Positions 5,261-58,720 of a stretch of DNA of 64,000 nucleotides are shown one piece after another. The stretch lies in contig NC_135250.1 in assembly GCF_964204865.1 (NCBI RefSeq), positions 20,336,001 through 20,400,000 on the forward strand, read 5' to 3'. Each line of letters starts with the position of its first letter. Positions within the stretch are counted from its first letter, which is position 1. The notes below the pieces were generated by a model, which saw only the letters and a list, made by a program, of their open reading frames with translations, did no database searches and was not told the DNA's origin. This DNA comes from Styela clava (Eukaryota). Both the position numbers and the translations under genes were made by a program.

Positions 5261-5264
5261 TTGC

Positions 5265-25310: not shown

Positions 25311-25899
25311 TCAGAAACGCACGCCCAAAACAGAGGCAGGAATTAAGACTAATTGTAGATCAAATATTCACAGAGAAGCACATCACAGGAAATATAACCG
25401 AGAGTCAAATTTTGTTCTGCTATTCGCTCAGAAAATGGAGCATATACAAATTAATTAGTTAATTAAATTAATCAAATTATAAATTCACGGCATCCATTCA
25501 GACAACGTCGGATTTCTTTGTCTCATTTCCGCAGTGAATATATATTATATTTGATAACGGTAAGATGATACTTTTGACAATTACAAAATGAACTTCTAGT
25601 TTCCACTCCGTGTAGAACGGCTGTAGATCATAAATAAAAATCAATGAAAGCCCGTGTCTATTATAGTAATAAATAATAATTCAATCATATGACATTTCTT
25701 GTACGATTCATTTGACAATAATATCATTCCGTACCCAATTAACACTTCAATAAACAAACTTTTAAAGGAAAATTTGAATTAAATAGTTTTGAATTTTACT
25801 AAGAAACCAGTTTTCTATAAATAAATGAACATTTACAGAATCAAAGTATAATCAGTGCAATTTACATGCTATTGTGTTTCCGTTGAATGCAAAATTTTC

Positions 25900-28800: not shown

Positions 28801-31800
28801 TCATATTTAAATTTTTAACTTCTTTAACGGAAAATATGTGGAAAAAGAATAATTATCCCGAATAAGAATGGAACAAATTTCAAATTTAAAAAATTTTGAA
28901 CCGATTAAATTCTGGAACACTCGTATAAATTGAAAACAGGTAAGGGTAAGTGAATGTCGCGGTTTTTATGGAGTTTGAGGTCCTATGCTCCAAACTACCA
29001 AGTTTATAGGTAATCCGGACCTGACTTTGCCCCACCCAAGGTGTAATATATTGTATATAGTCAATGTTGAGAGTTGTCATTCAAGATATCTACTAACCTA
29101 ACGTATACCAATGGGCGTTTATAATGGTTTTTATTCAACCAAAGCCGTGAAAACGTCATATGACAAATTCGTCTAGTCTTGTGCAAAATTTCAATAGTAA
29201 GGCAAAAACAAACTCGAGTTCAATTTATCTTTTAGGATATTATCTTACATATATTCATCAGATGACTGAATTTAAAGAAACTAAAAACAATATATTACAG
29301 ACTTTCATGGCAACTACAACGTTTTGTATTGACTAGGTTTTTCATACAATGATCAATGTAACTGTTGAAAAAAAAATTGTGAGTAAATATATGTACACAA
29401 TTTTAAGATTTTGGTCGTCCTGGAATTTGTGAAGTTTGAACGGAATTGAGCATTTCCAACCATCATGAATAAACTTTCCAGCCCTGCACGTACTATAAAT
29501 TATATACAATATATACCTATATGTCTCATTTCAATTTATTCAAACATGAAATAATAACTCAGAATGAAATACTATTATAAAATAGTATTGAATTTATCGC
29601 ATCCATTCAGACACGTCAGTTTTCTTTGTCTCTTTTCCTCAGTAAATATATATTATTTTTGATAACCGTGAGATGATACTATTGACAATTACAAAATGAA
29701 CTTCTAGTTTCCACTCTAAGTAGAACGGCTGTAGATCACAAATAAAATCAATGAAAGTCTCCGCTAATTATAGTAATAAATAATAATTCAATCATAGAAC
29801 ATTTTGTCTATGATTCATTTGACATTAGTATCATTCCGTACCCAATTAATACTTCAATAAAGAAACTTTAAATGAAAGGTTGAAAGTAAGTTTAGTGCAA
29901 TTTACTTTCTATTGTGTTTTCGTCAAATGCACGTTTTGCACATTATTCAGATTCACAGTCAGTTTAGATATCTTTGATTATTATAGATAGTACCATAATA
30001 TGATTTAATATCATTAATTTGGAATTAATTTTGAACTATGTAATATACCTTATATTATTTATAATTATGTTGATATACCTTTCATGAAATAGGAAAACCA
30101 ATCATATGAACCATAAAACTGCCAACACAATTCCTACTGAAAGAACCCATGACTTGTTGCATTCCATATCGAAAAATCAAAACCATTAAACACGTGAGCT
30201 AAAAAGGGAAAATTAAACTTCTATAATTTACCTATTTGATTATATTAAGCTTGAACTCTATGATTTAAATATTCGCATTTTACACTTAGAGATTCTAGCC
30301 ATGCTATGAAACATATTTTATGATATTGATCCCACAGGTACAATTAGTATTTCTATATTGCATGTTAGCTTAACCAAATCAGATCTCTGAAATGTACTCT
30401 GTGTACATGAACATTTGAATCATTATAAAAGTAATAAATTTTCTTGTTGTTGTTGTTGTTCTTGTTAAAGAATGCTATATTCTACAATTGATCGATAATA
30501 AAATTTAATTTACGTAAACTTGGTTCTGGTTTGTGTCCAAAATACATTGCCGTCTTTGGTCTCGATAACTTTGCAATGCGTAAAATCCTTGTTGTCCCCC
30601 ATAAATCGCCACGTCCGATAGCGAAGTCAAATCAAACTCTTTGTCGTAAACTAAAATAAAAGTCGTTCTAATTTGATAAAAATAATAAATATTTACGTTT
30701 GTTTTGGATCTTAGGACAAAAATGTCTCGGTTTGATTTATTGTTCAAAACTTTGTTCTCAAATACAATACATCTTTATCACATATTACATATTTTTTTTT
30801 ATATTCAACTCATTTCACTGGAATGTGGGATATCTGTACAATAGTTATACTGAATCTATACAAACCTTCGAATATTGTAAAACTTCTTGCAGAACGTGTC
30901 ACGTTATTTGAAGCAAAGCATTGATATTTACTTGAATTTTCTATTTTTGCGTTTTTGATAAACAAAACAGACGTTCCGGCAGATTTTCGATATACTCGTT
31001 CACTGACTTCTTCTTTGACTTCTACGGCATCACGGTACCAACTAAGATTCGGAACAGGAAAACCTGAAGCAGTGCATTCAATTTCCAAATTGTTCTTTCT
31101 GGGATTGTCGTCAAAAACTTTACTTTTCATGGAAAAACTGTAACGAGGTAAAATGGGAGAATTTACAAGAAAAATATTGCTTTTATTTTTTATCAAATTT
31201 TGACCGAATCCTACGAGACCAGATATTTTATCCACATTGCTTACTCGGTGCATTAGGGTATTTTACTATTGGTAACTATCAGAGATTACCAAAGTAATAA
31301 TTGAAAAATTCTGTTGTTATATTGTTTCAACTTACTTTTTTCACATGCAAATTCTAGTTTTTCTTGACAATCGCAGTTTTCCCATCCACTGTGTGTCAAT
31401 TCGACACATTAACCTGTTCGAGGATTTTCGACATCAAACCCAACATTTCTTTCTCGGTTCCCTAAAAATGGGCATAAAGAGTTGTCGGTTATGAATTGCG
31501 TATATTTTTCCGAACAGCATTGAAAAGCTATGTGAACTATTTAGGTAATCGATAAATGATCTGGATATTACATAATTGCTGCGATTAGTTTCTAAATTGT
31601 TAGCCGAAAAGATGGAGGAAATTTTAATTTAGCATGGTCAAAAGATATTAAACAATAAATTTTTATCATAAATATCATTGGAATTATTGATTCTTGCTTT
31701 TTCAATTCACGTCGTATTTTTTCATGAACCCTTTCGTTTTCAATTCTGACAAGTCGACTTCCTTGATTTTCACAAGGCTATTCAAATGTCAATGCTGTTG

Positions 31801-32590
31801 ATGCGCTCGACGAAAAACTGAGTGTTAAATCCGAATAATACGAAGCCGAAATATCGGAAGTATCTGTAAATGAAGTAGTAAGATTAGAATCTTTAAAATC
31901 AAAATTTTTTTTAATTTTTTTTGCGGATTAAGAAGTTTGATAATCCGCATAATAGCCCCGAAGATCGATATAAAAGTTATAATACAAAAGTAAATATGGT
32001 ATCTAGCTTCAATTTACCTATCTGACAAATGTAACCAAAATAATCATCTTAATGTTTGTCGTTTCATGTATGATTTCAATGAGTCAAGCAAGATAGGCAA
32101 AACGTAGAGGTTGACCCGGCTCCCTGAAAACACAAATAAGTTTTATCCGCTTGAGATGTAGATGTGTGTGTGCAAAATGACGACACAATCCTAATTTTCG
32201 GAATCAAAGTATTTTTTACAAAGATAGACTAAAAAACTGCAAAGTTACAAATACTATTGGGGAAAATTATTTATTCAAGGTAGTCGATTACAATAAAAAC
32301 AAATAAAATCTAACCAAATAATAAGATTGATTCGTTCCATCTCACATTAAAATTAATAATATAATCATGAAAATATATGTGATTTGTGAAAATTAATTCA
32401 TTGGCTCCAGGCGGAAAATCTCAACATTTTCTATTATTGATAAACAATCACCAGTTTCTAAATCCAGTATATACGAGTGTTCCATCATCCCATACCCAGA
32501 TGCCTTCATTGTTGAAGCCACTTGCTCCTATCCACACATTTGGGTAACCCCTAATGTTGCAAAACATGTATCAAATTGGTTTATTACAAA
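25900..32590 (-). repeat. Left arm of large imperfect palindrome (inverted copy of ~36597-42170)
   Basis: Colinear reverse-complement similarity through introns and exons; extra blocks at ~26900-27870 and ~28900-29400 are present only in this arm. Confidence 0.9.
30078..32550 (-). pseudogene. 5'-truncated pseudogene of CTLD-CTLD-Ig-TM gene A (exon 3 to TM exon)
   Basis: Exon 3 GYPNVWIGASGFNNEGIWVWDDGT is intact. Exons 4 and 5 are frameshifted with stops, the Ig exon (30866-31138) has TGG>TGA, and the TM exon has an in-frame TGA. No homolog of exons 1-2. Confidence 0.9.
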
Positions 32591-32775
32591 ATTGGTTCAT
32601 TCCACCATGAGTATTACTTCAATTTCTTGTATAGCTGAAAGAAAGCGTTGGCTATTCATGATGATAATATGAATTCGGTTCTAGAGGAAAAAATAAATTC
32701 GTTTTATTTCAAAACTTATATATTATCTATATATATCGTGATATATCTTATTATATAATATTAAATGACAATAAA

Positions 32776-33132
32776 AGCAAGAGAGCAATGTTCCAATATA
32801 TGGACACGAAAGCCCAAACAAAGTAGAACGAGTATGCAATATGTCAAAGTAGCCTACCGGTAGCGTGTGAAGGCGAAACAGCCAAAAATGCACCATTTTT
32901 AATTTTGATGACGTCATCGCACAAAAAAACGAATCAAATGGAGCCCATAGAAAGATTTGGAAATAAAAAAAGTAATAGCCTTCTAGAAAATACAGTCCTA
33001 AACTACTGAAAATATTGAAGCAAATGTCCCATCAGTTATGAGAGCGATTTTTTTACAAGAAGAAAATAAATAATAACAAGAACAAAAACAACATAATAAG
33101 AAAACGATCAATATGTTCACTTCTGTCCAATA
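32776..33132. mobile_element. HINE-like element, family 2
   Basis: CAAGAGAGC...TGGACACGAA at one end and CTTCTGTCCAATAA at the other; homologous to 62627-62960. Confidence 0.65.
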
Positions 33133-35714
33133 AAATGATTTGTTTTCAAAAAGATGTTTCCGCTTCAGGCTTTGCTAGTAGTAGTCATTTGAAAGTGTTA
33201 AACAATCTGCTCAAGAAACTGTGTAGAAATCAAATAATGGATGCGAAAAATTTGAAAAAAGCTTTTCATACTTACCGTTACCGAGTTCCCAATTTACCCG
33301 ATGTTTCTGTATTTTAGCATAATTGAGTAATTAAACAGTATTTGTGGAATTTTATTCTTTATTATCATGTTTTCTATCCAACAGAATTAGTCCAAAAATA
33401 AGTTCCCAATGCGCACAATTTACGAAGGACATTAATTAGATCCTTGGTTATACAGCGGCTATATGTGGTTTTTGAAACTTTGCTTGAAAAGTTTGCATTA
33501 AAAATTTTACAACTACTTACCAGAAAAAAAGATAATTCATGATATGCGCCGGAGTTTCCCAGTAAGTGAAGATTAAGCCGACATTTGAGTTGCTTTGAGT
33601 AATTTTTAAATTCGTTCTAAATCCCGACATTGATTAAAGATAGAAATAACAAACAGAGTGAATTCAGATATAAGGAGGTTTTCCACATTTGTATTTCAGA
33701 TTGTAAGTTAATACTTGCCTGTGTATGATACATTATCATGAGATACCCCGTATTTTTCCTTCGCAATTGAATTTTCATATTGTGATTCTGCAACTTTCAA
33801 CATATGTCTCACAAATTCTTCGTTATTTGGCATTTCCCTAAGACAATTGTGTTCTGAAAAAAAAAACATAAAAATAGTAGCAAAGCAAAGAATTATATCA
33901 CATTCACTGCACCGAATATTCTTAACGAAAACGATTGACCATAAGCTGTGTGGCGTATTTCAAGAAATTCAAAAACATTTAATTATTGTATAGAAGCACT
34001 AAAGACACTGAAGTGGCAAAATTCGTTTCAAAGATTTAACCCTCCCTTCCTATTTATTGTGGCCTATGTAAACTTTTCCAGTTTTGCAATAACCTAAAAC
34101 AAAAAATAGTATTCTAAAATATTCAAAAACGCTCTTGCCTTCTATTATAAAATTTTGTTTGTATTGAGACCGATATTGATGTATGTGCCCCACCCCAGTG
34201 AATGAAAACATTGAACATAAAAAACACGTGAAACATGCCAAAATTTTTTTTTTTTTACGTAGGCAATTCAATTTGTAGAGACGGTCATGAGTTGTGAAAA
34301 AATTTGATGGACGCAAAGAAAGAAAGAATGGAAACTTTACGATGCGGAATATGATGGAAAAGATTTTCAACGCAGATATTTTGCGATCAATGATGAATCT
34401 CTACAGTAAACCTGTACTCTCAATGAGAAATATTGGTTAATATGTGATAACGAAGCAAAATCGCATTATTTTCGAAAGAGGTGGCAGACAAAGTCAAGCA
34501 TACAATGTCCGTTGTCTATAATACTATATAAATACGAAAACAAAATCCTAAAAAAGATTTTGTTGTTCTATTTCTTGTTTATGCATACTGATTCCCGTGT
34601 ATAAATACCAGCTTTACCCTTGATGTAATTTGCAAAGATATAAAATGTATGCTGCTGATAATAATTGCAAAAAAAATAAAAAGTATGTGACATGCATTGA
34701 AATAGCATTTTTAATATTTAGTAGGATATGGTAATACATTTGTATTATTACAGCAATACGAAGTTGCGGCATGAAATGGACAACGTAACGCAATCTCTTT
34801 AATATTCATTTTCAAATACAATAATATATTTTGTTCCACTACCTATTTCAAATATCTACACGCATTGATTCAAATCAAATCAAAAAAGGATATATCGAAA
34901 GCCAACTTTTAATGAGGTAAATGTTTTCTGTTATGTCTATTCGTATTTTAATTGAATGATTTCTATGCGAAATAGTCCTTGGGTATCGTATAGGTCGTTT
35001 ACTAATAAACGGTAATTGTAACAGAAATGTTCAAAACAATCGCTGAGTGTTTGTTTAACTCTTGTCATGAGTATAGTATGACTAATGTTTACCATTATAT
35101 AACCAACAGAGCCGAGGCTAGAATTCGAAGTATATATTATTTCACGGCAAATTTGAGTCATTAAAACCGCAAAAAATTAGAAAATATTCTTCTATGATTA
35201 TTCGCCATTCAAATGGTTTTAAAAGTGAACCCATTTTCGTGAGATGTTGACAGATAGTAAGAACACAAATGAAATCGAGTCTTTGTCGTCAGTGTTTCTA
35301 AGAATTCTGTTTTAGCCTCAAGGTATTAAACTGATTTGCAATATAAAAGCAAATAGGGCACCTCTAATTCTCAGTAATAAAATGATATTTATGTGGAAGC
35401 AAGCTACAAATTTATAAACTGCGCTAGATCAATTTATTTGCGTGTTGTTAACTATAAAAGTGCTGTAATACCTTGTAGAACATCTGCAATCATAAATCAC
35501 CAATTACCTTGGATACGCATTTCACAATAAATTTCACGATAAAAATCTGTCACATCTATCTTAAAACATGTTAATATATTTCATGAGGTATATAAAATTT
35601 TGAAATTTGCTGCCAATTTCAAATTTGCATTTCAGGTTTAGTAAAATGTTTTAAACAATCGTTTATCTGATTTTATTTTAGATTTAAATCATTGTACGCA
35701 TTTCTTTATTTAAA

Positions 35715-38700
35715 ATGTTGTACGGAACCTTCATTTTGCTCCTCGGAATGTTTTCTCAAAGCCGAGCTGGTAAGTAGTCTAGTCAACAATTTCTTTAATA
35801 GTTTATACGACTGCAAATAAGTTATTCTTGATTTATTAGCTGTGTAAAAACTTGTAAATGTAAAGTGCTTGTATATATGAATTTTCATGCTTTTAAAACC
35901 TTTTTACTTGTACCTTCCAAAATAAAGTCACTGATTGATTTGGATCATACCTAACTGTTGTAAATTTTTATTAAACAAATTTTGAAGTAGAGCAAATTGA
36001 ATTAACATACTTTTTCCTACATAAAACTCGTCTTTATCAATCAAAAACAATTTCAATTTTCATTCAAATAGTTCAACGTGAAACGGTTTATGTTCGTAAT
36101 TACGAACTTACCTTATTCACTGGCATTGATGATGCCACAAATCATGTACGTGCTCGGTTAGCGTGTACAGTTTGGAAACCTCGTTCTCACTTGGTTTATA
36201 TCAAAGACGAACAAGTTCAAAATGCCGTCGATGATTTGTTAGAAGCCTGGTAAGTAGGGTCAACTGCTTTTACAGCAATCTGAAATATTTTCTTACATTT
36301 TGGCTATAACTATTTTGTCACAGTGAAGATAATGCATCGTCTTTCTTCAACTGTCTATTATTAGATCTGTGAGGCTAATTCTTTCTTTGACTAATCTTGC
36401 TTCAGAGAGTTGAAGGATATCATTGGATATTCCCATAATGAAGAAGGTTTTATTTCAATTTTGGACTGAACACTCTGTTTTTCGTCACAGCTGTAATCAT
36501 GGAAATTTTTGGTTTCATGTTGACTTAAAATACTAATATAGTTTACATTAGAATTTGAATTTTTAGTCAACATCATTAAGTGGGCAATCGCATATTCTTT
36601 TGTAATAAACCAATTTGATACATGTTTTGCAACATTAGGGGTTACCCAAATGTGTGGATAGGAGCAAGTGACTTCAACAAAGAAGGCATCTGGGTATGGG
36701 ATGATGGAACACTCGTAGATACTGGATTTACAAACTGGTGATTGCTTTATCAATAATGGAAAAATTTGAGGTTTTCTGCCTGGAGTCAATGAATTAATTT
36801 TCACAAATCATATATATTTTCATGATTATATTATTAATTTTAATGTAAGATGGAGCGAATCAATCTTATTATTTGGTTACATGAAAATATATTGTTTTAA
36901 TTGTAATCGACTACTTTGAATAAATATATTCCTCACTAGTAATTGTACCTTTGCAGTTTTTTTAATCTATCTTTGTAAAAGTTACTTTGATTCCAGAAAT
37001 TAGGATTGTGCCGCCATTTTGCACACACACATCTACATCTCAAGCGGATAAAACTTATTTGTGTTTTTAGGGAGCCGGGTCAACCTTTTCGTGTTGCCGA
37101 TGATATGGATTGCTTGGCTCATTGGAATCATACATGGAACGATAAATATTGTCGCCATTATTATGGTTACATTTGTCAGATAGGTAAATTGAAGCGTGAT
37201 ACCATATTCCCTTTTGTATTATACCCTTTATAACGATCTTCGGGGCTATCATGTGGATTATAACTTCTTAATCCGCAAAAAAAATTAAAAAAAAAAATTA
37301 GTTTTGAAGATTTCAATCTTACTACTTCGTTTACAGATACTTCAGATATTTCAGCTTCGTTTTATTCGGATTTAACATTCAGTTTTTCGTCGAGCAAAGG
37401 TAACGCATCAACAGCATTGACATTTGATAAAGCCAAACAGCATTGTGAAAAACAAGGAAGTCGACTTGTCAAAATTGGAAACGAAAGACTGTATAAAAAA
37501 ATACAAAGTGAATTAAAAAGGCAAGAATTAACAATTTTAATGAAATTTATGATAAATATTGATTGTTTAATATCATTTTTTCACGCTCAATTAAAATTTC
37601 TTTCATTTTTTCGGCTAACAATTTAGTAACTAATCGCAGCAATTATGTGATACGCAGATCATTTATCGATTACTTGAAGAGTTCACATAGTTTATCATTG
37701 CTGTTTGGAAAAATATACGAAATTCATAACCGACAAACTTTTTATGCATGTTTTAAGTGACCCGAAAAGGAAATGTTGGGTTGATGTCGAAAACCCTCCA
37801 AAAAGGAAATGTGTCGCATTGACACACAATAGATGGGAAAGTCGCGATTGTCAAGAAAAACTAGAATTTGCATGTGAAAAAAGTAAGTTGAAACAATATA
37901 ACACAGCAATTATTTTGAAAAAATGATCTCGATAATCTCTGATAGTTACCAATAGGGGAAAACCCTAATGCACCGAGTAAGCTGATAGGATTGGCGGATA
38001 AGCAATATGAATAAAATATCTGGTCTCGTGGGAGTCGCTCAAAATTTGAGAAAAAATAAGAGCAATATTTTTCTTGTAAATTCTTTCATTTTACATATTA
38101 AATATGTGAAATCATTCCATGAGTCAATTACTTGCGAGAAATGCAAATTTTTTCAAGAATAACTAACAATCTTCCCAAAACCAACAAGAAATACCAACAA
38201 CAAAAAAATCAGCAAGGCGATTCATAAGTCCCCTTAGTGTCCAGTTATAAAATATTTAATCTTTGTTAAAGTTTTCAAAACCGTAGCTCAAGAATTCTCA
38301 CATTCAAACAAATAATAATAAGAAAATCGAGGAAAAATGATTTTTTATTCGCAAAACAGATACTTAATATCGTAAAACGATGGCTTTGAAAGTTCGTTCC
38401 ATTATTAACCGCGTACCCGTTAATTAATATCCAATACTTTGTTACAGTTTTTCCATGGAATGTAAAAGTTTCTGACGACAATCCCAGAATCACAGAAACA
38501 ACAAATTTGGAAATTGAATGCACCGCTTCAGGTTTTCCTGTTCCAAATCTTAGTTGGCACCGTGATGCCGTAGAAGTCAAAGATGAAGTTAGTGAACGAG
38601 TATATCAAACAAAATCTTCCGGAAAGTCTGTCTTGTTTATCAAAAACGCAAAATTAGAAGATTCCGGAAAATATCAATGCTTTGCTTCAAATAACATGAT

Positions 38701-39509
38701 CCGTTCTGCAAGAAGTTTCACAATAGTCGAAGGTTTCTATATTATATTCAGTATAACTATTGTGCAGATATCCCACATTCCAGTGAAATGAGTTAAACAT
38801 ATAAAAAATTATGTAATATGTGATAAAGATGTATTGTTGTATTTGAGAAGAAGGTTTTGAACAATAAATCAAACTGAAACATTTTTGTTCTAAGATCCAA
38901 GACAAACGAAAATATTTATTATTTTTATCAAACTAGAACGACTTTTATTTTAGTTTACGACAAAGAGTTTGATTTGACTTCTCTATCGGACGTGGCGATT
39001 TATGGGGGACAACAAGGATTTTACGCATTGCAAAAACAGTTATCAAGACCAAAGATGGCAATGTCTTATGCACAGAAACCCGAACCAAGTTTACGTAAAT
39101 TAAATTTTAATATCGATCAATTGTAGAATATAGCATTCTTGAAAGAAAAATTATTGCTTTCATAATAATTCAAATGTTCATGTACACAGGGTACATTTCA
39201 GAGGTCTGATTTGGTCAAGCTAACATGCAATATGGCGATACTAATTGTACCTATGGGATCAATGTCATAAAATATGTTCCATAGCAAAGATAGAATTTCT
39301 AACTGTGAAAAGCGAATATTTAAATCACAGAATTCAAACTTAATATAATCAAATAGGTAAATTATAGAAGTTTAATTCTCCCTTTTTAGCTCACATGTTG
39401 AATACCTTTGATTTTTAGATATGGAATGCAACAAATCATGGGTTCTTCCAGCAGGAATTGTGCTGGCAGTTTTATGGTTCATATTATTGGTTTTCCTATT
39501 TCATAAAAG
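35715..39509 (+). CDS. Gene A: signal peptide - C-type lectin - compact C-type lectin - I-set Ig - probable TM receptor (multi-exon)
   Basis: Exons 35715-35769 (MLYGTFILLLGMFSQSRA), 36072-36249, 36639-36737 (VWIGASD), 37071-37183 (EPGQPF..DC..WND..C..YICQ), 37337-37520 (GC donor), 37758-37882, 38448-38732 (Ig: IECTASGFPVPNLSW..DSGKYQC), 38954-39094, TM exon 39419-39509 (WVLPAGIVLAVLWFILLVFLF). Frame is open through exon 8; 3' structure uncertain, possible last exon 40076-40178. Confidence 0.8.
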
Positions 39510-42500
39510 GTATATTAACATAATTATAAATGATATAAGTTATATAACATGGTCAAAAATTTATTCTAAATTCATTCCTCTCTACAATCAAAGATAACTA
39601 AACTGACTGTGAAACTGAAAAATGTGCAAAACGCGCATTCGGCGGAAACACAACAGAAAGTAAATTGCACTGAACTGAACTTACTTTCAACTTTTCTTTC
39701 AAAGTCTGTTTATTTAAGTATTAATTGGGTAAAGAATGATACTAATGTCAAATGAATCATAGACGAAATGTTCTATGATTAAATTAATATTTATTACTAT
39801 AATAGACGGAGACTTTCATTGATTTTTATTTATGATCTACAGCCGTTCTACCCAGTGTGGAAACTAGAAGTTCATTCTGCAATTGGCAATAGTATCATCT
39901 CATCATTATCAAAAATAATATATATTCACTGAGGAAAAGAGTCAAAGAAACCCGACGTTGTCTGAATGGATGCGATGAATTCAATTTTATTTTATAATAT
40001 TTCATTCTGAGTTATTATTTCATGTTTGAATAAATTGGAATTGGATATATTGTATATAATTTATTATACGTGCAGGGCTAGAGAGTTTATTCAAGATAGT
40101 TGGAAATGTTCAATTCCGTTCAAACTTCACAAGTTCCCGGACGAACGAAATCTTAAATTTGTTGCATTTTTATTCTAGCTAATTATTTTTATCCACATAT
40201 TTTCCGTTAAGGAAGTTAAAAAATTAAGAATTGGTAAACGAATAAGTTTGACTGATTTTGAAAAAAAAGCCATTTTACCCTCATTTCTCTTTTATTAAAT
40301 ATTAATAATAGCTATATTATCTAATCATCAACGGATCCAATGATTATATTTATATTTTTACTATATTCCAGAATACTAGAACCGTTTGTAATAAAAATGA
40401 AAGGATAATTTTGGTTATCATTTCGATGACATTCAATTTAAAAATGGGCTTAGAACAGAGAAAATAGTATATTAATTCAAAGTTTTTGATTTTGAACTCA
40501 GTAAATACAAAATCAAAAAATGGTTTATTATTAACTATTTGAATGCTGAACGTTGAGAAATCGTTCATTCAGCATTCCAACCTAATTTAGTGCCACCCAA
40601 CATTACCTTTTCATTTCATACTCACTTAATATATCTATACCCGTTTCTATTTACGATTTTATTATTACAAATTTACTAAGTGACTTTTATCTTTGCATAT
40701 AGGTATAGGTTGATTTGATTATTTTTAACTCGCAATTATATTACTCAAAGGCTTTGATTTATAGTTTCCTAGAGTGTGGGATATAAAAGTGTAATCTTAC
40801 ATTATAGTGTTTGAAGTCATTGAATGAATTAAATAAGTGCTATGAATCAAGCGGACCCATGGTAACTCCTCGCTCATGTCGGCAACACCTTGTAGTGGCT
40901 ACAAACTGGGATATAGGATGTAGCTCATTAACTGGGCCAGGCGTTGCGATAGAAATATTCTACTATAGTACTCGTATAAAACAAAACAAGACATGCCAAA
41001 AACGTTTTAATGTTTCCACTGGTCAAAAATGGAAACCAGAACGACCTCTGCATGGTATTCGATTCTGACGAAAATTTAAATTTCAGCTTGGTTTTATTTT
41101 TTAAAAAGTAAACATCTACGCTTGTTTAATAACTAAATGAATGTTTATGGAATAAATTTGTAGTCACACTTAAAAAATATTTGACTAAACATATGATCAC
41201 TTATCAGACTTTATATTCCCTTGGCTGGTTTATACGTGCGCCATTGAACTCACCAAAATGTAGAAAGAACGTAGTGTTTACAAATGATTTAATGCAATTA
41301 CTGATATTTTTGAATGAAGAAATTTGCTCATTGCAAGATCACGCCTCCTTACTCAGAAATAGAAGAAATTCAAGTCTGAGCGCAGTTCCGGCCGACCACT
41401 AAAATTGCCATAAGCTACTAAGACTATTGACGTCATACTTAAAAAGCCAATGTGATCAGGAAAACAGCTATAAGGTTATGAATCCCACATAATAGCAGTT
41501 CTTGGAAAAAACTTTGGGCATGATTTTTTTTTATATAGTAGATACACTGACAGTGAACGAATGCAAGTTCACAGCTAACCGAGTTTCATGACTCAAAACT
41601 AATTTGGAGGAACAAATTTCCACATTTCAGAAGAACACATTTGTTTACAATATCTGTAAAATAAACACAGCGACGCAACATTTTGGCGATGAACGAGTGG
41701 TTGCGAATTTGATATTCTTTTTAACTATTTCCAAAGTGTTTTAATACGGTCACAGAAGTCCCATCCCAAACACGACAACCATACTCCACTCTTGGACGTA
41801 TTACATTTCCATATAGAGATAATATCCAGATTTCTTGTGTGTAATTTATATACTTATACAAAACGAGATATGATTGGAACAACAACAAAAAACAGTATAT
41901 TTATGTTTTTATGTCAATTGTATATGGCTGAATTTGACAATATATTATGGGCAATACTTTATTTGCGTATATATTATTTACTCCAGCATATATAGATGTG
42001 AATAAAAATTTGATCAATAAAAAATTTATGATTAAAATGATACGAGTGATTCAGGTTGTAGGTAGGGCAAAGTTGAAACAACTTTTATTCAAATAATATC
42101 GATTATCGATATTGAAGTAGATATGAATCAAATAATTTCGCGTTAAAATTTTACTGTGAAGAACATTTATTATACGGACGCGCAAAAAAACGTTTTGTAA
42201 AGACGGTTTTTTCTAATATATAAGCTCAGATATAATCAGTGGGTATAGAAATTACTCTGGATGGCCATCAAATTTAGAATCAAAATGCAATTCGATATGA
42301 ATATCTATATAACTATATAACACGACCAGCATCGAAGTTTTGTAGATAAATATGCCCCGAGTTAGTGTCAATTAGAATTGGCTAATAATTCGTTAAAAAT
42401 ATGTTAGAAACATAAAATTTGAATAAAATCAAGAGCCATCAGCTAGATACTGCGCAAAAAATTATCTTTAGTTATTAATGTTATAATTTGAATAATTTTT

Positions 42501-43025
42501 TCCAATAACAAATATTGCCCACAACTGTCGAAAAATTAAATTAATGGTAGTTCCATATTGATGAAAATAATGAAATATAATATAATGAATAAAACGATTT
42601 ATTTCTATTGGCTTATGATTGTAATCAAACAATCGCTTGTTAATCAAATTATGTGGAACATAAATTTTATACAAGCGAATTTTTTCTGAATTGTGTTGGA
42701 ATGATGTTCAACTTTTATAATATGGCACCAACCGAATATATTGAACTTGTTGTCAACTTTGGCAATTTGTTTTCCATGTTAATGGTGGTGACTAAGTTGA
42801 TCATATGGACTATGTTGTCGGACTAAAAATACTTTCACATCAGGCGAATAAAAACACTTTTCGCTTTGTTCACATTTAATCATTCAATCTTACTACGAAT
42901 TCCTTCAACCAAATATACACGAATATAAACGAATTACAGATTATAATCGTTATCAGATATAAGACAGTGTGTGATTCAGATTTATTCTTGGAATTTTAAA
43001 TTGCAAACTGTACGAACTGCTTCAA

Positions 43026-43387
43026 CTAGTGAAACTGTAAGTAACTATACTGCACATATGTAACAAAGTATGAAATATTCCCCGTGGTGATATCTGAATA
43101 ATAAGGCTTTTCTTTAAGTTTCGTTTCGATCAACCTGGGTATAACGGCCACACGCACAGTGACTACATTTTGATAAACTGGAGAAATTAGTTACGGCAAT
43201 ACATGGTGTATTAAATGTTAAAAAAAATTTATGAATATATATAGATAAGGATTTATCAATGATTTTTTATTTACATCTTTGTAGGAAAATTGATCGCAAG
43301 TTATACTTCGGAGACTATGAATTTACGTTTTATGAAGATGGAAAAGACAGATATTACCGCGCTCAACATGTCGTGTACACATATTTT
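43026..43387 (+). pseudogene. Inserted fragment of intron 1 and exon 2 of a gene-B-like paralog
   Basis: Homologous to 46649-46996; exon part KLYFGDYEFTFYEDGKDRYY versus B TLYVGDYELTYYNSGKDAYY; 1-nt frameshift; flanked by a ~30 bp direct repeat. Confidence 0.8.
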
Positions 43388-43719
43388 TTTAAATTGAAAC
43401 TTTACGAACTGCTTCAAACAGTCGAACACTTGCTTCTATTTTCGACAAAGTTATTTTACACCATTGTTACAACGAACGATTTTTTAGCCCATTATTCAGC
43501 AAATACTTTTGATGACAATGTTAAAAAATCAGATTTCGAATAATAATGATCAATTTTTTGTTTCTTGTGATATAAATTGATTGAAAGTTGCCGCAGTATA
43601 AATCTAAGTTTTTGTGTGAAAGTCCATTGAAAGGGGCAACGAAATAATTTTCTTGGTTGACTTCGAAATTTGATATCTTTTGTGTTATGAATCAGAAATA
43701 TGAGTTGCATCAAATAGGA

Positions 43720-45106
43720 TAGCGTTTCCCAACCTTTTTTGTTCACGGACTAATTTCTCACCGGCGAAAACCTTTGCGGACTCAAGGTACGTTTAGTGCA
43801 ACGGTACTCTGTGTAAAGAACCAATAAAACCAAACACAACAGAATTTCAACGATTTTCAAAATGGGAAATTCGCTGCAATTACGCGTTCGTTAAAAGAGC
43901 CGACTTGTTAGTGTATAATGGCCTGTTCTGTCGCACAATATTCAGTCCATGACAACGACGAGAATTTAAAATGTTTTTCTATTTTAATTTAATTGGGTTC
44001 ATGGTAACTCGCGGCTGCGTCGACTTACGGAAGATTAAAGCATTACGTCTTTAAAATACTACGACAATCTGCGGCAATCGCCCGATTATATTTAGTTTTG
44101 ATACATATATATTGTTTGCGCTCTTGCGAATTTGTTATTGCCTCAAGAACAATCCTACTATCTGCTATAAATTTCCAGAAAGTACAACTTGATTTAGTAC
44201 TTATTAAAAATATATTTAAAGTATATTAGTAAATTAAAAATACATTAATCGCCTTGCTTTATTATTAATTTAATTGTGATCATTTTAATCTGCGGTTGTG
44301 TTGACGAAATAAAAGCAATACTACTCAGAAAATATCATGACAAACCGTGGACACAAAAATGCGATTACATTTTGTTTTGATTCGTATTTTTGTGAATTCG
44401 ACAAAACTGAGTTGTTCGTACAACACTTACGGCGCTCCAGCACTGTACGTACCAATGTGAAGGCGGTAATGCAAAGAATCCTAAGGGAAAATGCCCTGGT
44501 ACGTTTACTTCGGTGGCACCCGAAATTTTGCGATTGGCAATGTCTAAAAAAGCGTCTTCAATCGGTCGCGGACAATCATAAAACAAAACTTGTGCTATTC
44601 TCCGTTTTATTTTCCGTATTTTGTATTGCCGCTTTTCAAGTAAGAAAATTTGGGTTGACACCTGGAAGGAAAAAAAAAATATTCCTTGTTGTTCGAACTC
44701 GGGGGAAACACCACTTAGGTATCTATTGAAGCGTGTGCAGACTCGTGTTTTCGTCGGAAATCCGCCAAGTGAGTTGGGAAATCCAATCGTTTGATTAAGC
44801 GACGCGCAAGTGACCTGTTGCGCCACTTGTTACCAATTTTCGAATAGTAATTGCTATTCTAATAGTAGAATATTGGAATATATGCCCAGCACTACTCAGT
44901 AACAATTAACTATTGACTCGATTAATGTTATGTGAATAAACTTGCTCTTTATGTTTTGTGTAAATTCTAACGTGAATCGTAACTTGGCTGATAGTTAAGT
45001 TTCGCAAAAACGTATGCGTCCCGCAGTGAATTTCGGGCACGTTGCGGACTCATTCAACCGCTCCGCGGACTCATCTGAGACCGCGTACTCGGGTTGGCAA
45101 ACACGG
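43720..45106. mobile_element. Non-autonomous hAT-type element
   Basis: TIRs TAGCGTTTCCCAACC / GGTTGGCAAACACGG, 8-bp TSD AAATAGGA; empty paralogous site at ~54160. Confidence 0.85.
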
Positions 45107-46457
45107 AAATAGGATTATGGCGGAGTTTGGCAACACAATTCAAAAACTGGATAGCGATTGTCTCTTATTAATTGTAAAATTAGACCAATTTGATCACATT
45201 GTAACTTTAAAAACATGCTTCCATAATAATATACTTTTTAAAATAAATAAGCGTACTTCAATTTGTTGTACCAAATCATAATCATCAAACAGCGTCATAA
45301 CGCAATTCACGATCATATTCAAAACAAAATAAATAGATTATGCTTACATCTGGTTATATCCATAGGTAGGTTGATATTTTTCGAGACTGCAATGCTAGAA
45401 TCCCAGCTCATCCCTGCCATATAACGTGTAGAATCCACGAGGATGGGGGTGAGGTAAAGAGGCTAAATATGACCTTGGACGTTGTATAGTTAAAGTGGAA
45501 TTGGTCGGCGAGAAATATGACTCTGTTCAGTTCTTGTTATTACTTTTTGCAAATATGATTATTAAAACCAAATATAATTTCAGTTATTGATGTGTACCAG
45601 ATGTATTATAGTGGAAGTGGATACTTTATGACTAAATAACGTATGTATATTTAGAATACCTTCGAAATAGCATCAAATTGCGATGTCAAAGCGACATGTA
45701 ATAATGTAAACATGTAATAATTGTTCTTTTACTTAAGATTTTTAAAATGCCTTGAGCGATATTTGTTCGCAAAAACACCAATCGCTATATAAAATCTTCT
45801 GTTCGGAAAAAGCCAGCATATCAGTGAATATAAATTTTGCGGACGCCAGAGCACGTATGGTAGGTACGGGACCTAATTGTTAAAGCGTTGGAATTACACA
45901 TCCCGGGTCCAGATCCTGTGCCCACAAATGCATTGTGTAGGTAATGCCAAACCGGTCTCCCAATAGCTTTTTGGTTTGTCAATAAAGAAACGATTCTTCA
46001 AAATTTGCAACTTGAAAAAATTGATTTTCATTATAAACTTTCGTTCTAGAGAAATACCTTGCATTTTCTTTTTTTGTTATGTGGAAAAATTTTGTTATCG
46101 AATGGAATCAGTTGAAGAAGTCAACATCAAAAAATAGAAAGAGTTTTTAAAAACATTGAAAACATTAAACGAACGCCTCCATATTCGTTACCTTCTCTAG
46201 TCTTGTTTCAAGCAAACGGTTATATATCCGTATAACTTTAGATATATGAATCACTATTGAAATTTAAGGCCTCAGTATGGTGCGCACTAATTTGGTTTGG
46301 AAACATTTGCCACTGAAATTTTTGAATCCACATACTAACTAAATTATTTTACAAAAATATTCTGTGATAACTGGGTATTGTTTCCTAATAAATACATGTA
46401 TCATTCTATTTAATATTGATAGAAGCATAAATATTTTTTTCAGATTTTTTTATAGAA

Positions 46458-49400
46458 ATGGAATTTCAGACAATGAAAATTTTAGGATTAGCATTTGTTT
46501 TCTTTATTTCGCAGAATGAAGGTAAGTAAATATAAAATCGTTGATTGTAAATAAATACAGCTGCACAGAAATACTTCAATGATTATCAATTAGAGTGGCT
46601 AAAATTTTAAAATTCTTTGATTTGTAAAATTATTCAACATCAGTTCAAAGTGAAACTGTAAGTAACTGTACTGCACATATGTAACAAATTATGAAACATT
46701 TCCCGTGGTGATATCTGAAAAAAAGTTTTTTTTTTAAGTTTCGTTTTCTTTAAATCAACCTGGATATAACGGATACACACAATGAATACATTTTGATAAA
46801 CTGGATAAATTATTTACGTCAATGCATGGTGAAATGTTACAAATTCTTATGAAAAATATAGATGAACAATTATCAAAGATATTTTATTTACATCGTTGCA
46901 GGAAAATTAATCGACACGTTGTACGTCGGAGACTATGAATTAACCTATTATAACTCTGGAAAAGATGCATATTACTCCCATCAAACTGCTATTTACGAAT
47001 GTGTTGTAAAAATGCCTGGCTCAAGATTGGTGATTACAGATAATGAAAATTTACATGAAGCAGTGAAAGAACTCTTGAAAAACAAGTGAATTTTATTGAT
47101 TTTGTCTCTCTCTGTGCGTGTGTGTTTTTTTGAGTGTTTTTTTTTTTATTTTATTTTATTAAACTGACTAAATACTGTTAGTCTAACGATGTTGGAAAGC
47201 AATAAACGTTCTGAAAGAAATACATATATTCCAGTAAAAGAATCAAACATATTTTGTGTTTCAGTACATCAGATAAAGTCTTGATTGGTGCATTCAAGAT
47301 TAGAGAAACCAAAGAATACTATTGGATGAATGGGGAAAAGCTCAAAGCCGGATTTACTAAATGGTAATACTTTTTATTACTTTTTGTGTTTAAATTGTTT
47401 CCGACCCCTTATAATATTGAATGTGTTATTTAATGTTAAAGGGCTGAGAATGAACCAACAACTGACTACCATACTACAGAGGACGTGTATGTTACATTTG
47501 CGGATTCTGATTTAAAGTGGTTTGTAGAGCCATATTTCTATGGCACTCGAACTGGATTCATATGCCAAACTAGTAAGTTAAAATTATTGGTGTGAGAAGA
47601 TTTTGTGTACATAATATATATTCAAATTTCAATGCTGTGTTCATTTTTAATTTCATGTTAATAATTTTAGGTCGTTATTGGTGTTTTTTCTTTAGTAGAA
47701 CATAAAAACTTTTATCAGAGGTTCTCACGCTGCAACGATAATCGGTTGTTTTTGTACAATTTCTGTAGCTTAGTTGTATTTTATATGTAATACGTATTTA
47801 GAAATATTTGCCGCTGTAGCAATATTCTCTGACGTGGAAATTGCCATCACAGAATGTATATTTTAGCATTATAACCTAAACACTTATACTATATTGTAAT
47901 TATGCAGGAATTGACAAACTCCAACCGTCGTACTACGCTGAACTTTCTTTCGAAGATACAAACTCTACAAACACAGGCATTGGAACTATGACCTATTGGG
48001 ATGCACAGAAGATGTGCACAAAGAATCAAAGTAGAATTGTAGACATTGTTAACGATAGGGCGTTCTTTGAGATTCGTGAAAAGTGTGCCAGGTATTTCAA
48101 CTTTTCCATAATGCTTTCTTCCCGTAGCGGACCGCTTCTATTGTTTATTAGATGACAGAGATATTCGATAGCATAATTATACAGTATGTGGTAAACTAAA
48201 CTGAATACTTTCTAAATACTTTAGCAAAATTATTATGCTTTTATCTGTATTATGAGTATGATTCTTAAAAAATGTAAATATTTTTTTTAATATTATTCGG
48301 CCTCCAATTAACAAAATTGACTTAGCCTAGTTGAGACACGAGCTGGGGTTTTTTTTAGTCCAAATTTCTTCCCTATGTGTATTCATGACAAACTTTCGCT
48401 CAAGATAGATAATTAAGATTATATTTTTCAAACACCAATTCAATAAGAAGAAAAAAGAACCATTGAAACTTTTGTACTCTTATTTAGTGACCCGACACTC
48501 AAGTATTGGATACGAAAAGATGAAAACTCTAAAAACTGTTTAATTATGGGAAGTGAAGGATGGTCACAAAATGATTGCGATGATCCGTCTATTTATCCCA
48601 TTTGTGAGAAAAGTGAGTATCAGGCACAAATTACGTTGTTTATAATATTCACAAGTTACATAGTAGATGAATCGACGATAAAAACAGAGCGTGTTGACGT
48701 TTAAGCTATTAAATAATTTGTATATGCTACATTTCCTGGGCGACTAGCAGAACAAAATTTGACTCTCGGTTATATTTCCTGTGATGTGCTTCTTTGTGAA
48801 TATCTCATCTACAAATAGTCTTAATTCCTGCCTCCGTTTTGGGCGTGCGTTTCTGAGCAATTTTACTGAAATTGTATGTGAAAATGATTTAATTTTTAGT
48901 TCCACCATGGGGCTTGAGAGTTTCCAACGAACGACCAGTTATTAAGAGAAAAGAAAGCATTACGATTGACTGTAGAGCATCAGGATATCCAATTCCAATT
49001 GTTGGTTGGCAACGAAGGGATAGAACTGTCAGCGAAGTGTTAAATCGACGAATCCATCAGATAAAATATGACGGATTTTCTCGACTTGTGATAAACAACG
49101 CCAAGCCTTTTGACTCAGGAAGATATCATTGCTTTGCCACTAATTCAATTAATTCTGTGAGAGGATACGCAGATGTCAGAGGTAACACAAGTACAGTTTG
49201 TAAAATTCGTACGGGGCTACGCCCTGACATCATTCGTGCCCAATTGTGTCAATATATCAAGTTAGATGTACTATTTATATTATTATTATTATATTCTTAG
49301 TTGATGGTATGATGCAACATAATTTTACAACATTTGAAGAGAATTTCGTACAAAATACGTAAGTGATGTATTAAAATGGATCTCCGTTATGCAACATGTT

Positions 49401-51178
49401 ATATGAATTAAATTACGTATAAGCCCATGTTATTAAAACGCCGGCTGTTTCCTAAATAACATTAGTCAATATTACAATGTTATTCTAAGCTATGTTGTCT
49501 TTACTGTTCACGCACATATGAAATGAAATATTAGCTTTTGTAGAAACATACGAAGGAATGCATCTTTGTTGAAAGGCTTGGTCGATCCACAATTTAAAAT
49601 AAATAAGTATTCAGTTGATTCAAGATTCTTGATTAGTCATCTTTATTCTCGCTAAGGCATCTCTGTATTACAAGCACACTGATCCATTTGCGCAAAAGAA
49701 TAAAGCAAGGAAAGTTAGTTTCGCGTAACCCCGACTTAAAGTATTAGGCTAAATAAGTATGTGGTATTTGTGCATTCTAATAAAATCGGTACTCCTTTAG
49801 TGTGTGTGTACCAGGTGAGGGTTAGGCTCTAATTTGATTCCGATTTCCCCTATTTTAGCTCTATTACGAGTTCGGGGACTGTCCGTCTTAGCCAATTCAA
49901 TTTACCCCCTTACCAATGGGCTTCAGTCCGTCTGCACAATTTGTTGTAAAATAGGCCAACAAAATTAATTACCACCATATTGATACACACACTTCGGGAG
50001 CGCCCTAAAATCAAATATATTGTAATATTTTGATTAAAAACAAGATTACCTGATACACACTTTTCATACAGAATATCTGAAAGCAATAAACCAAGTGCCG
50101 CTCTACCATCAATTGGTCGACCTTCAATCAACAATTTAGGTGAATATCACCTATTTTCTGGAAATATTTTGATATATTTATACGTACGATCATTGCAACC
50201 ACTTATTTTGTGTGAAAATAATTTGTTATTATTCAATATGTGGTTATAGTCAACTTTAGATATTAATCTGATGTAATACAAAAATGCATATTAACCTAAG
50301 TTAATATTTATTTTAAATAATATTATTACAAGATGAATACTTCATACTATATAAGAGAGCACTTTTTTTTTCAGAACATTCGATGTGCAGTACATTGGAG
50401 TTCTCAGTTATTGCAGGTTTTGCGTTACTCTGGTTAACTGTTATCCTGGCGTACACAATATATCTTTGGTAACGTATTTTTGTTTGTTTCAAGTTACTCA
50501 TTTTATCCAACAAAAAGCTGCTTTAAAACCTATTCCAACCCTATTCTCATAACTATCGAAGTATTTGCGAATCATCAATTCTGAGCATATCAGCGCTAAA
50601 AACGGATTTTTATCAAACTTTGAAATTTACGTTTCCACAATCTATTACAATATTTATTTCTACTGGTTAAGCTAACTATATAATAGCTAAATTATCAGCT
50701 AATGCTGTTTTTTGTAAATGAGACTTCCAGTCTACGCGAAAGCGACATTTTGTTTAAATACTTTTTACTCTTTCACAATAACTTTATATTTTTTATTTAT
50801 TTATATAGTTGCTTCAGGAAAACAGCGAAGTCGGCTGATGTGTTCACATCCAATAATCTTGATGGTAAGTTATATTTCAGTATGTTACAAATGTTCTAGA
50901 TTTAATAACAAGCACCTCGGTAGTTTTACTAGCGATTCCTCAGCCAAAAGTTAAATTGTCAAATGTCTTTAAAATTTTTGTAAGTGTTGGCAAGCGCAGG
51001 TGGTTCGTCGTATCTATATCTTTATTATATTAAATATATCAATGATGATTATTATTCTTTATCGATTTTTGTTGGAGTATTGTTAAATAAGGTACTCAAA
51101 CACAGCGTTTACATTGCTTATGATATTTTTTTTTCAGAATCAGCGAATGCGAAAAATGTGATGTCAAATACAAAATAA
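46458..51178 (+). CDS. Gene B: type I membrane receptor, signal peptide - CTLD - compact CTLD - I-set Ig - stalk - TM - short tail (~460 aa)
   Basis: Exons 46458-46521 (MEFQTMKILGLAFVFFISQNEG), 46902-47085, 47265-47363, 47442-47572, 47908-48091, 48488-48612, 48900-49181 (Ig: IDCRASGYPIPIVGW..DSGRYHC), 49301-49358, 50072-50139, 50375-50468 (TM FSVIAGFALLWLTVILAYTIYL), 50809-50864, 51138-51178. All introns are GT-AG, phases are compatible, and there is no stop. Confidence 0.85.
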
Positions 51179-57384: not shown

Positions 57385-58720
57385 AAATGTCGATTAAGAA
57401 CAATTATCATCATTTTATATTTAATATTATTAAAATATAGATATGGCGAGTCACCTGCGTTTGCCAACACTTCCGAAAATTTCAAAGGAATATGACGATT
57501 TACCCTTTGACTGAGGAATCGCTAGTGAAATTACCAATATGCTTGTTAATAATGCTAGAACATTTGTAACCTACTAAAATATAACTTACCATCAAGAGCA
57601 TTGAATGTGAACACGTCAGCCGACTTATCCGTTTTTTTGAAATAACTATACAAAGTAATACAAAATATAAAGTTATTCTCAAGGAGTAAATGGTACTTGG
57701 ACAAAAATTCGCTTTATGGTAAACTGAAATTGTATTCAATAATTAGCTGAATAACTAACAGAAATTAATTTTGTAATGGATTGTGGAATCGTAAATTTCA
57801 AAGTTTAATAAAATTGGTTTTCATCTGCTGATATGCTCTTAATTGATGATTCGCAAATATTTCGGTGGGTATGACGAGAATGAGGGTGAAATAAGCAGCT
57901 TTTTGTTAGAGAAAATACGTCGCCAGGAACAATACAAAAAACTTTACCAAATATATATTGTATACGCTAGATTAACGATTAACCCCCCGTATTGCAAGTA
58001 CTTTAATAACTAAGAACTTCCATGTACTGTACATCCAGTGTTCTTAAAATATATCAAGTACGACTTTGCAGACAGTATGAAGTATTTATCTAGTGATGTT
58101 TTTATTTGAATTAATTAACTAAGTTAACATGCATATTTGTAATACATGTGATGTGATCTTAAGTGAGTCTAAATCTAAAGTCTGAATCTATAACCACATA
58201 TTGAATAATAATAAATTATTTTCACACAAAATAATATAATACTCATATCATAATATTTTATCTCTAGAAAATATGTAATATTCACCTGAATTGTTGATTG
58301 AAGGTCGACCAAATGCTTGTATAGAGTGGCACTTGGTTTATTGCCTACAGATATTCTGTATGAAACGTGTGTATATATCAAATCATGCTCCTTTAAAACA
58401 AAATATCGCAGTATACCCAATTCATTAATAAGTATATTAGATTAAAGATGACTATTCAAGAATCTTGAATCAAATAGAATACTTATTTATCTTAGAAGTA
58501 TTTGTGGATCGACCAAACCTTTGAAAAACATACATTTATTCGAAAGAGTTTAGTGTGACTGCTGAAATGTCGACAATAAACATTTATTGTTTCTACAAAA
58601 TAAATTTATCTCATATATACGTGAATAGTAACAACACGATATCTTGGAATGACATTGTAATAAAGACCAACGTTATTTAATAAATCAGCCGGCGTTTCAA
58701 TCACATAGACATCCACGTAA
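57385..58720 (-). pseudogene. Inverted partial copy of gene B 3' region (stalk, TM, cytoplasmic exons)
   Basis: Reverse complement of ~49410-51080; the TM exon homolog at 57948-58042 carries a +1 frameshift in a G-run. Confidence 0.8.

Follow-up and report, generated by a model that had tools for sequence, protein, structure and literature searches.

A 64,000-nucleotide stretch of the Styela clava genome (C1:20336001-20400000 of the 377-Mb assembly GCF_964204865.1, NC_135250.1; N count, 0), called the window below, carries two intact genes, gene A and gene B, the former transcribed and spliced. Each gene is shown to encode a type I membrane protein built of a long-form C-type lectin-like domain (CTLD1), a compact second one (CTLD2), a single I-set immunoglobulin (Ig) domain, a stalk, a transmembrane (TM) helix, and a short tail. 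The species is a solitary ascidian of the same family as Botryllus. We hold with high confidence that the two genes are part of a real, expressed cluster of the family of BsCLT, a lectin of Botryllus schlosseri, under birth-and-death evolution. The explanation that we favor, and consider probable, is that they represent a Styela clava multigene family homologous to BsCLT whose products are probable surface binding or recognition proteins.

Structure and domains of genes A and B

Exon candidates for gene A were derived from open frames and splice signals, and contigs of four sequencing runs were then compared with positions 35600 to 41599. Three runs from three studies (X1, X3, and X6) are RNA-like, and the fourth (X7) is DNA. 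All nine gene A introns were present as exact joints in contigs of the RNA-like runs and none in X7, which covered every bin of the interval; about a quarter of the sampled words were present in X1, X3, and X6, equal to the exon share of that interval. Gene A thus defined occupies positions 35715 (the ATG) to 39867 on the forward strand, with the stop codon at 39865-39867, and encodes 431 residues, with intron phases 1,2,2,1,2,1,1,1,2 (exons are listed in Table 1). Its transcript starts at or before 35661, and an AATAAA lies at 40029-40034 in the 3′ untranslated region (UTR). Intron 5 (37521-37757) is of the GC-AG type (GCAAGA...TTTAAG), its joint, 37520/37758, being present in X1 and X3; gene B has a GT donor at the matching position. 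An earlier note on this DNA had placed the gene correctly but had missed both this intron and the stalk exon at 38954-39094.

The gene A product consists, in order, of an 18-residue signal peptide, CTLD1, a Ser-rich linker, the short CTLD2, the Ig domain, a 47-residue stalk, the TM helix, and a 10-residue tail. In one X1 contig, the sequence continues past the exon 8 donor (39094) as far as 39201. Translation past the donor would add ten residues and then reach a stop at 39124-39126, giving a form without the TM helix, and a soluble isoform arising by exon 8 read-through is possible. Expression of gene A seems to depend on sample or condition. Among the runs of one study (P2; runs X3, X11, and X12), its exon share was 0.23 in some RNA-like runs and 0.00 in others.

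Gene B (LOC120348469) spans 46458-51178 on the forward strand, 51178 being the last base of the stop codon, and has 12 exons encoding 461 residues. Its spliced coding sequence matches RefSeq protein XP_039274526.2 (P0047) of Styela clava residue for residue, and all of its introns are GT-AG. The product has a signal peptide, CTLD1, compact CTLD2, Ig domain, two stalk exons, a TM helix predicted at residues 406 to 433, and a 32-residue tail. The intron phases are 1,2,2,1,2,1,1,2,1,2,1, of which the first seven equal those of gene A. Global identity between the two proteins is 31% (128/418), ranging from 27% in the linker and CTLD2 to 33% in CTLD1 and 43% in the Ig domain. These results bear out the earlier proposal of two spliceable genes between 35715 and 51178 with a common domain order, the same first seven intron phases (1,2,2,1,2,1,1), and about one-third amino acid identity: for gene A, RNA mapping confirmed the nine introns, which the DNA run lacked as joints, and for gene B the support is the identity to XP_039274526.2. 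The G+C content around both genes is ~31%.

Lectin exons were scanned with Pfam exon by exon, and results for full-length domains come from database proteins of the same family, which were retrieved by a whole-library HMMER search with a 57-position profile of exon-2 peptides. The Ig exons passed on their own (E values of 1.5e-15 for gene A and 1.7e-13 for gene B); gene A exon 7 matched Ig_3 at 1.5e-15 and I-set at 2.3e-14. The lectin exons gave piecewise Lectin_C matches at consistent profile positions (41-71 and 77-106 for gene A exons 2 to 4, and 2-38 and 71-107 for exons 5 and 6), and full-length family members passed clearly: Lectin_C (PF00059) was found with an E value of 1.8e-7 in gene B and 3.6e-20 in P0001, an A-type paralogue 85% identical to gene A. 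An AlphaFold2 model of gene B, built from a 14-row family alignment, had a mean predicted local distance difference test (pLDDT) score of 69, with the Ig domain above 93. The modeled CTLD1 matched CL-K1 (Z 15.7, root mean square deviation [rmsd] 2.3, 125 aligned), as well as NKp80 (Z 15.5) and Dectin-1, and the modeled Ig domain matched NCAM2 (Z 14.4, rmsd 1.4, 93 aligned). Gene B CTLD1 lacks the C2-C3 pair of the cysteine framework of the CTLD fold. Pfam, the AlphaFold2 model, and the fold search all support the CTLD1 and Ig folds assigned to these genes.

The family's CTLD2 columns aligned with its CTLD1 columns in hhalign with a probability of 97% (E value, 1.1e-10), skipping a long loop of ~40 residues; the control alignment of CTLD2 with the Ig columns gave 0.5%. 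Because the match skips that loop, we read CTLD2 as an apparent compact C-type lectin domain from which the long loop, with its calcium- and sugar-binding region, is absent. A Link module is a less likely reading of CTLD2: the Xlink matches were partial (E value of 0.014 at gene A exon 5; 28.9 bits against a cutoff of 27 in P0001, with no single stretch passing) and CTLD2 aligns better with the family's own CTLD1. No Sushi domain was matched in Pfam scans of genes A and B and the family proteins. In a C10 paralogue, CTLD2 is longer by ~20 residues and contains a WIGG motif, and ~630 nucleotides (nt) separate its exon-5-like and exon-6-like matches (L017:3188-3821). Loss of coding sequence may account for the short CTLD2 elsewhere in the family.

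Homology to BsCLT and the calcium-sugar site

BsCLT (UniProt O17510) was among the exon-2 profile hits, as P0020, and is collinear with the family over CTLD1, the short CTLD2, and the Ig domain. It aligned with gene A over 349 residues in a local blastp comparison (E value, 1e-37), with gene B over 331 residues (E value, 1e-24), and with the secreted paralogue P0036 at 31% identity (E value, 2e-52). BsCLT and P0036 grouped in a tree with support of 95/96, on long branches, and the A-type, B-type, and other lineages were separate and unresolved. By these alignments, BsCLT is a true homologue of genes A and B, beyond analogy; it has the three ectodomain modules in the same order, and the family is therefore of a known kind. 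The earlier note had cited BsCLT as an example of a lectin with an Ig domain, which is correct as to its domains, but it had treated as a parallel what is better described as a relative.

The exon-2 profile returned 41 hits. Those sharing the architecture came from Styela clava, plus BsCLT, and the remaining hits whose domains were scanned were bacterial or multi-CTLD proteins; absence outside Styelidae is unproven because a 57-position profile has limited sensitivity. A word-based protein search with the family alignment recovered no other species, and one with BsCLT as the query found only BsCLT itself. Since the family alignment recovered just 2 of its own 7 members, these blanks carry little weight.

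The calcium-sugar site differs among family members. EPN, the Glu before the conserved cysteine, and WND are kept in BsCLT and in the C10 and C4 paralogues in the family alignment, and the five ligand positions are all intact in BsCLT, P0042, and P0051. The corresponding residues are QPF, M-D-C, and WND in gene A and EPT, E-D-V, and WFV or WFG in the gene B lineage, where both C2-C3 cysteines are also lost; P0036 has QPD. Neither A nor B has the combination of EPN or QPD with WND and Glu expected of a calcium-dependent carbohydrate-binding lectin. We infer that A and B have lost the EPN/WND site kept by BsCLT and the older paralogues. Ligand binding by A and B would probably be calcium independent or directed at non-glycan ligands, as in many lectin-like receptors.

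The gene A tail is HKSRSTQCGN, and that of gene B is free of tyrosine. Neither tail contains an immunoreceptor tyrosine-based inhibitory or activation motif (ITIM or ITAM), and neither TM core contains a charged residue. Among the older paralogues, P0042 (C10) and P0004 (C3) share the tail motif AVY(A/T)VE, and EFTN with a tyrosine after it is common to P0042 and P0051 (C4). Neither motif occurs in A or B, and neither fits a known signaling consensus, AVY(A/T)VE being no match to that of an ITIM. Because A and B have almost no tail and no signaling motif, signaling through them would need a partner or might not occur.

Gene turnover and rates of change

Five broken or partial family copies were located in the window by tblastn (Table 1), in line with the at least four that the earlier note had counted. 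In psiA, stop codons interrupt the equivalents of gene A exons 4, 5, 6, and 9. This copy lies in the left arm of a large inverted repeat, the 4,006-nt spacer of which contains gene A exons 1 and 2, and it evidently arose by inverted duplication. The innermost palindrome, at exon 3 (32442-32591 versus 36598-36747), is 97% complementary, and the outer parts are 82 to 89% complementary. For psiB, neither exon 2 nor the Ig exon was found by tblastn in the window. A fragment like the one at 43301-43420 also precedes B′, an upstream copy of gene B.

Within 80 kb upstream (C1 20.293-20.330 Mb) there are four further copies, namely, A′, B″, a broken A-type Ig and TM pair, and B′; two are intact, one has an altered 3′ end, and one is broken. 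The A′ protein is 85% identical to gene A, and exons 5 to 7 (CTLD2 and Ig) are duplicated internally, with a frameshift. This duplication (A′, C1:20297132-20299908) is in tandem, with a stop in the second exon-6 copy, and the RefSeq model of A′, XP_077968359.1, ends within the duplicated exon 5. Across 6.5 kb that include the introns, gene B and B′ share 95% identity. B′ (C1:20325594-20330121) has a fully open 460-codon frame with conserved splice sites, yet the matching RefSeq protein, XP_077968408.1, is only 116 residues long. Genome-wide, the exon-2 profile gave 19 strong open-frame matches on C1, C3, C4, C5, and C10 and ~12 weaker ones. For some family members, no Ig exon was present in the sequence that was retrieved, and one of these corresponds to the 259-residue secreted RefSeq model P0003. 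The duplicates, pseudogenes, and fragments together show a cluster that expands through segmental duplications, both tandem and inverted, and is eroded by exon loss and pseudogenization. The birth-and-death evolution proposed earlier is supported, among other things by the near identity of B and B′ and the origin of psiA.

The ratio of nonsynonymous to synonymous differences per site (pN/pS) was pooled over three independent sister pairs (B/B′, the C1:19.07 Mb copy/B″, and A/A′), whose intron distances are 0.04 to 0.16. The ratio was 0.60 for the ectodomain overall, 0.78 to 0.94 for the CTLD1 exons, 0.43 to 0.61 for CTLD2, and 0.31 for Ig. Exon 4, which codes for the binding loops, had a pN of 0.154 versus 0.063 elsewhere (Fisher P, 1e-6) at similar pS, and its ratio of nonsynonymous to synonymous changes (N:S) did not differ significantly from that of the rest (P = 0.14). 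The lectin head, exon 4 above all, changes fastest, with the Ig domain the most conserved part. Positive selection was considered and set aside: single exons reach a pN/pS of 1.5 to 2.8 in some pairs, on few changes, but the pooled values are below 1, and none significantly above 1 was found in the pooled sister pairs. Among individuals, represented by contigs of a few runs, gene A carried nine coding single-nucleotide polymorphisms (SNPs), five synonymous and four replacements, and it does not appear hypervariable in them. Of the rapid diversification claimed in the earlier note, fast amino acid change among paralogues is supported, with CTLD1 near 0.9; a ratio above 1 and hypervariability of gene A in these runs are not. 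Exon 3 is identical (100%) between A and A′, and its flanking introns are ~90% identical; this identity, the closer match at the innermost palindrome, and the uneven divergence along the genes hint at gene conversion.

Could A and B instead be transcribed remnants turning into pseudogenes, with the working members on C3, C4, and C10? The loss of the calcium-sugar site in both genes and of a conserved disulfide in B would fit such decay, as would the B/B′ pN/pS of 0.8 to 0.9, the many dead copies alongside, and the frameshift and truncated model of A′. However, the frames of A and B (431 and 461 codons) are intact, with good splice sites throughout, and open frames are kept in B, B′, and the C1:19.07 Mb copy. 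B lost its two cysteines together, purifying selection acts on Ig and CTLD2, and gene A is spliced in three studies. On balance, we regard decay as highly improbable.

Table 1. Exons of genes A and B and other family-related features of the window
Feature	Position(s)	Strand	Description and evidence
Gene A exons 1-5	35715-35769, 36072-36249, 36639-36737, 37071-37183, 37337-37520	+	
Gene A exons 6-10	37758-37882, 38448-38732, 38954-39094, 39419-39509, 39843-39867 (stop)	+	
Gene A exon 1	35715-35769	+	Start codon and 18-residue signal peptide; joint 35769/36072 in X1, X3, X6
Gene A exons 2-4	36072-37183	+	Long-form CTLD1, QPF...WND replacing EPN...WND; RNA joints; Lectin_C pieces
Gene A exons 5-6	37337-37882	+	Ser-rich linker and compact CTLD2, without long loop
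Gene A exon 7	38448-38732	+	Single I-set Ig domain; RNA joints on either side
Gene A exon 8	38954-39094	+	47-residue stalk, 141 nt; joints 38732/38954 and 39094/39419
Gene A exon 9	39419-39509	+	Transmembrane helix, hydrophobic stretch; joints in X1, X3, X6
Gene A exon 10	39843-40047	+	Last 8 codons, stop, and 3′ UTR; X3 contig end at 40047
Gene B exons 1-6	46458-46521, 46902-47085, 47265-47363, 47442-47572, 47908-48091, 48488-48612	+	
Gene B exons 7-12	48900-49181, 49301-49358, 50072-50139, 50375-50468, 50809-50864, 51138-51178	+	
psiA	30081-32549	-	Truncated, inverted; spans gene A exons 3-9, matched with exons other than the stalk exon; exons 1-2 absent; tblastn and inverted repeat
psiB	58860-61324	+	Gene B-type exons 3, 4, 5, part of 6, and 9; several stops; tblastn
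Gene B-type exon 2 fragment	43301-43420	+	First 40 codons; tblastn 45% identity, E value 7e-8
Gene B-type stalk exon (exon 9) fragment	24562-24627	-	Stop inside; tblastn match of 22 residues at 82% identity
Gene B-type tail exon (exon 11) fragment	57591-57641	-	tblastn 76% over 17 residues, E value 0.037, weak
Large inverted repeat	25482-42112		Left arm 25482-32591, right arm 36598-42112; 82-97% complementary; repeat search

Elsewhere in the window, open frames at 4591-5816 gave weak retrotransposon gag matches and a clear reverse transcriptase-RNase H match (E value, 1.6e-13), which we take as a degenerate long terminal repeat retroelement upstream of the lectin-Ig cluster. Between genes A and B, at 44337-44826, the G+C content rises to 0.37; two open frames (130 and 153 codons) overlap there on opposite strands, and Pfam gave no significant match for either. 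Rfam and tRNA scans of the window gave no match.

Candidate roles and known relatives

The products of A and B most likely act as binding or recognition molecules displayed at the cell surface, and they may possibly be released as well. An immune or allorecognition role for the cluster is a candidate only, and recognition of non-self, whether microbe or cell, is a possibility that we put forward tentatively. Several points weigh against the explanation that we favor. The RNA evidence covers gene A, and the gene B model rests on identity with a RefSeq protein; the run labels are coded and carry no tissue names; and the soluble form of gene A comes from one contig of one run. The fold search with gene B was filled by CTLD1 and Ig, so that the assignment of CTLD2 rests on profile comparison. 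The loss of EPN/WND, together with that of two cysteines in B, could mark early decay rather than a shift of ligand, and relaxed constraint would account for lectin-head pN/pS values close to 1 just as diversifying selection would.

Cell adhesion, or binding to matrix or tunic in development or tissue maintenance, would be another use for proteins of this build, with the Ig domain and CTLDs mediating contact. The Ig domain is closest to those of NCAM2, DSCAM, contactin, and Robo and is the most conserved part, short tails are common among adhesion molecules, and CTLD2 gives weak matches to Xlink, the hyaluronan-binding link module. High turnover, pseudogenes, and a near-neutral lectin head would, however, be unusual for core developmental adhesion genes; a conserved single-copy orthologue is absent, and the Xlink matches are partial, with none passing alone. 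We consider this reading unlikely.

The natural killer (NK) complex receptors (Ly49, NKG2/CD94, and NKp80) and KIR resemble the A/B family in being clustered, with fast turnover and pseudogenes, and CTLD1 folds like NKp80 (Z 15.5) and, as in NK lectin-like receptors, has lost the calcium-sugar site. A bolder proposal would make the A and B lineages and the tyrosine-tailed older paralogues a paired-receptor system for non-glycan, possibly polymorphic ligands, serving rapidly diversifying immune or allorecognition functions like those of the NK complex, or gamete self-recognition, and arisen independently from a BsCLT-type lectin in a solitary tunicate. Its attractions are the clustered paralogues with pseudogenes and recent duplicates, the concentration of amino acid change in the lectin loop exon, the lost sugar site, the contrast between AVYxVE in the longer tails of older paralogues and the nearly tail-less A and B, and the variable share of gene A among RNA runs of one study. 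We nevertheless judge it quite unlikely, somewhat more so than adhesion. A and B are type I rather than type II proteins and have no ITIM, ITAM, or charged TM residue, and the tyrosine motif of the paralogues fits no known signaling consensus. The pN/pS values do not exceed 1, exon 4 does not differ significantly from the rest in N:S, and five of the nine gene A SNPs are synonymous. Styela clava is solitary, and allorecognition in Botryllus uses Ig/Sushi proteins (PMC12582321). The relation to the NK complex and KIR is limited to shared domain folds. Of the KIR/Ly49-type organization suggested earlier, the tandem gain, loss, and pseudogenes remain, but not the signaling features.

The favored explanation, a BsCLT-like family of probable surface recognition proteins, can be compared with other lectin and Ig systems. 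Fester, uncle fester, and FcoR of Botryllus are likewise large clustered tunicate receptor families with alternative splicing near the membrane. Fester and uncle fester consist of Ig and Sushi domains with three TM helices, and FcoR is Ig-Sushi-Ig-Ig-TM; none has a lectin domain (PMC12582321), and the earlier suggestion that the fester coreceptors combine lectin and Ig domains was mistaken. A and B, in contrast, carry CTLDs and Ig without a Sushi match in the Pfam scans. Mollusc CREPs and BgSel and crayfish PcLec3, which promotes phagocytosis (PMC4944128), are invertebrate lectin-Ig chimeras too, but they have the Ig domain N-terminal to a single CTLD and are secreted.

For the lectin part of the A/B family, the closest solved sequences are those of the mannose-receptor family (MRC1, DEC-205/LY75, and PLA2R), the PLA2R match spanning CTLD1 into CTLD2 (query positions 28 to 201). 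Members of both families are type I membrane proteins with tandem CTLDs. A and B differ in having only two CTLDs, the second without the long loop and followed by Ig; they have no cysteine-rich or fibronectin II domains, and no endocytic tail motif was recognized in them.

The closest known relative is BsCLT itself, published in 1997 (Pancer et al., via PMC4944128 and PMC5465252); the descriptions examined there give it a CTLD and, after this, an Ig domain, report no functional analysis, and do not mention its second lectin-like module. BsCLT has a signal peptide, a long-form CTLD, a compact second CTLD, and one Ig domain in the order of A and B. It ends after Ig and is secreted, whereas A and B add a stalk, TM helix, and tail, the TM exon of A being present in spliced RNA and the TM helix of B being predicted. 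BsCLT keeps EPN...WND, whereas A has QPF...WND and B has EPT...WFV, and it is known as one cDNA, whereas Styela clava has ~19 loci, clustered. A lectin-Ig cDNA that has stood alone since 1997 is now seen to belong to a family of considerable size in a related ascidian. This family has membrane-anchored and secreted members and a compact second CTLD not remarked on before, is still gaining and losing genes, and has repeatedly lost the classical sugar-binding site. It offers comparative immunologists a set of candidates for recognition receptors, with RNA-backed exon models for gene A, in a tunicate that is both solitary and tractable. It is a known kind of system, that of the BsCLT-like lectins, with three notable variants: the membrane anchor, the compact second CTLD, and the loss of the sugar site.

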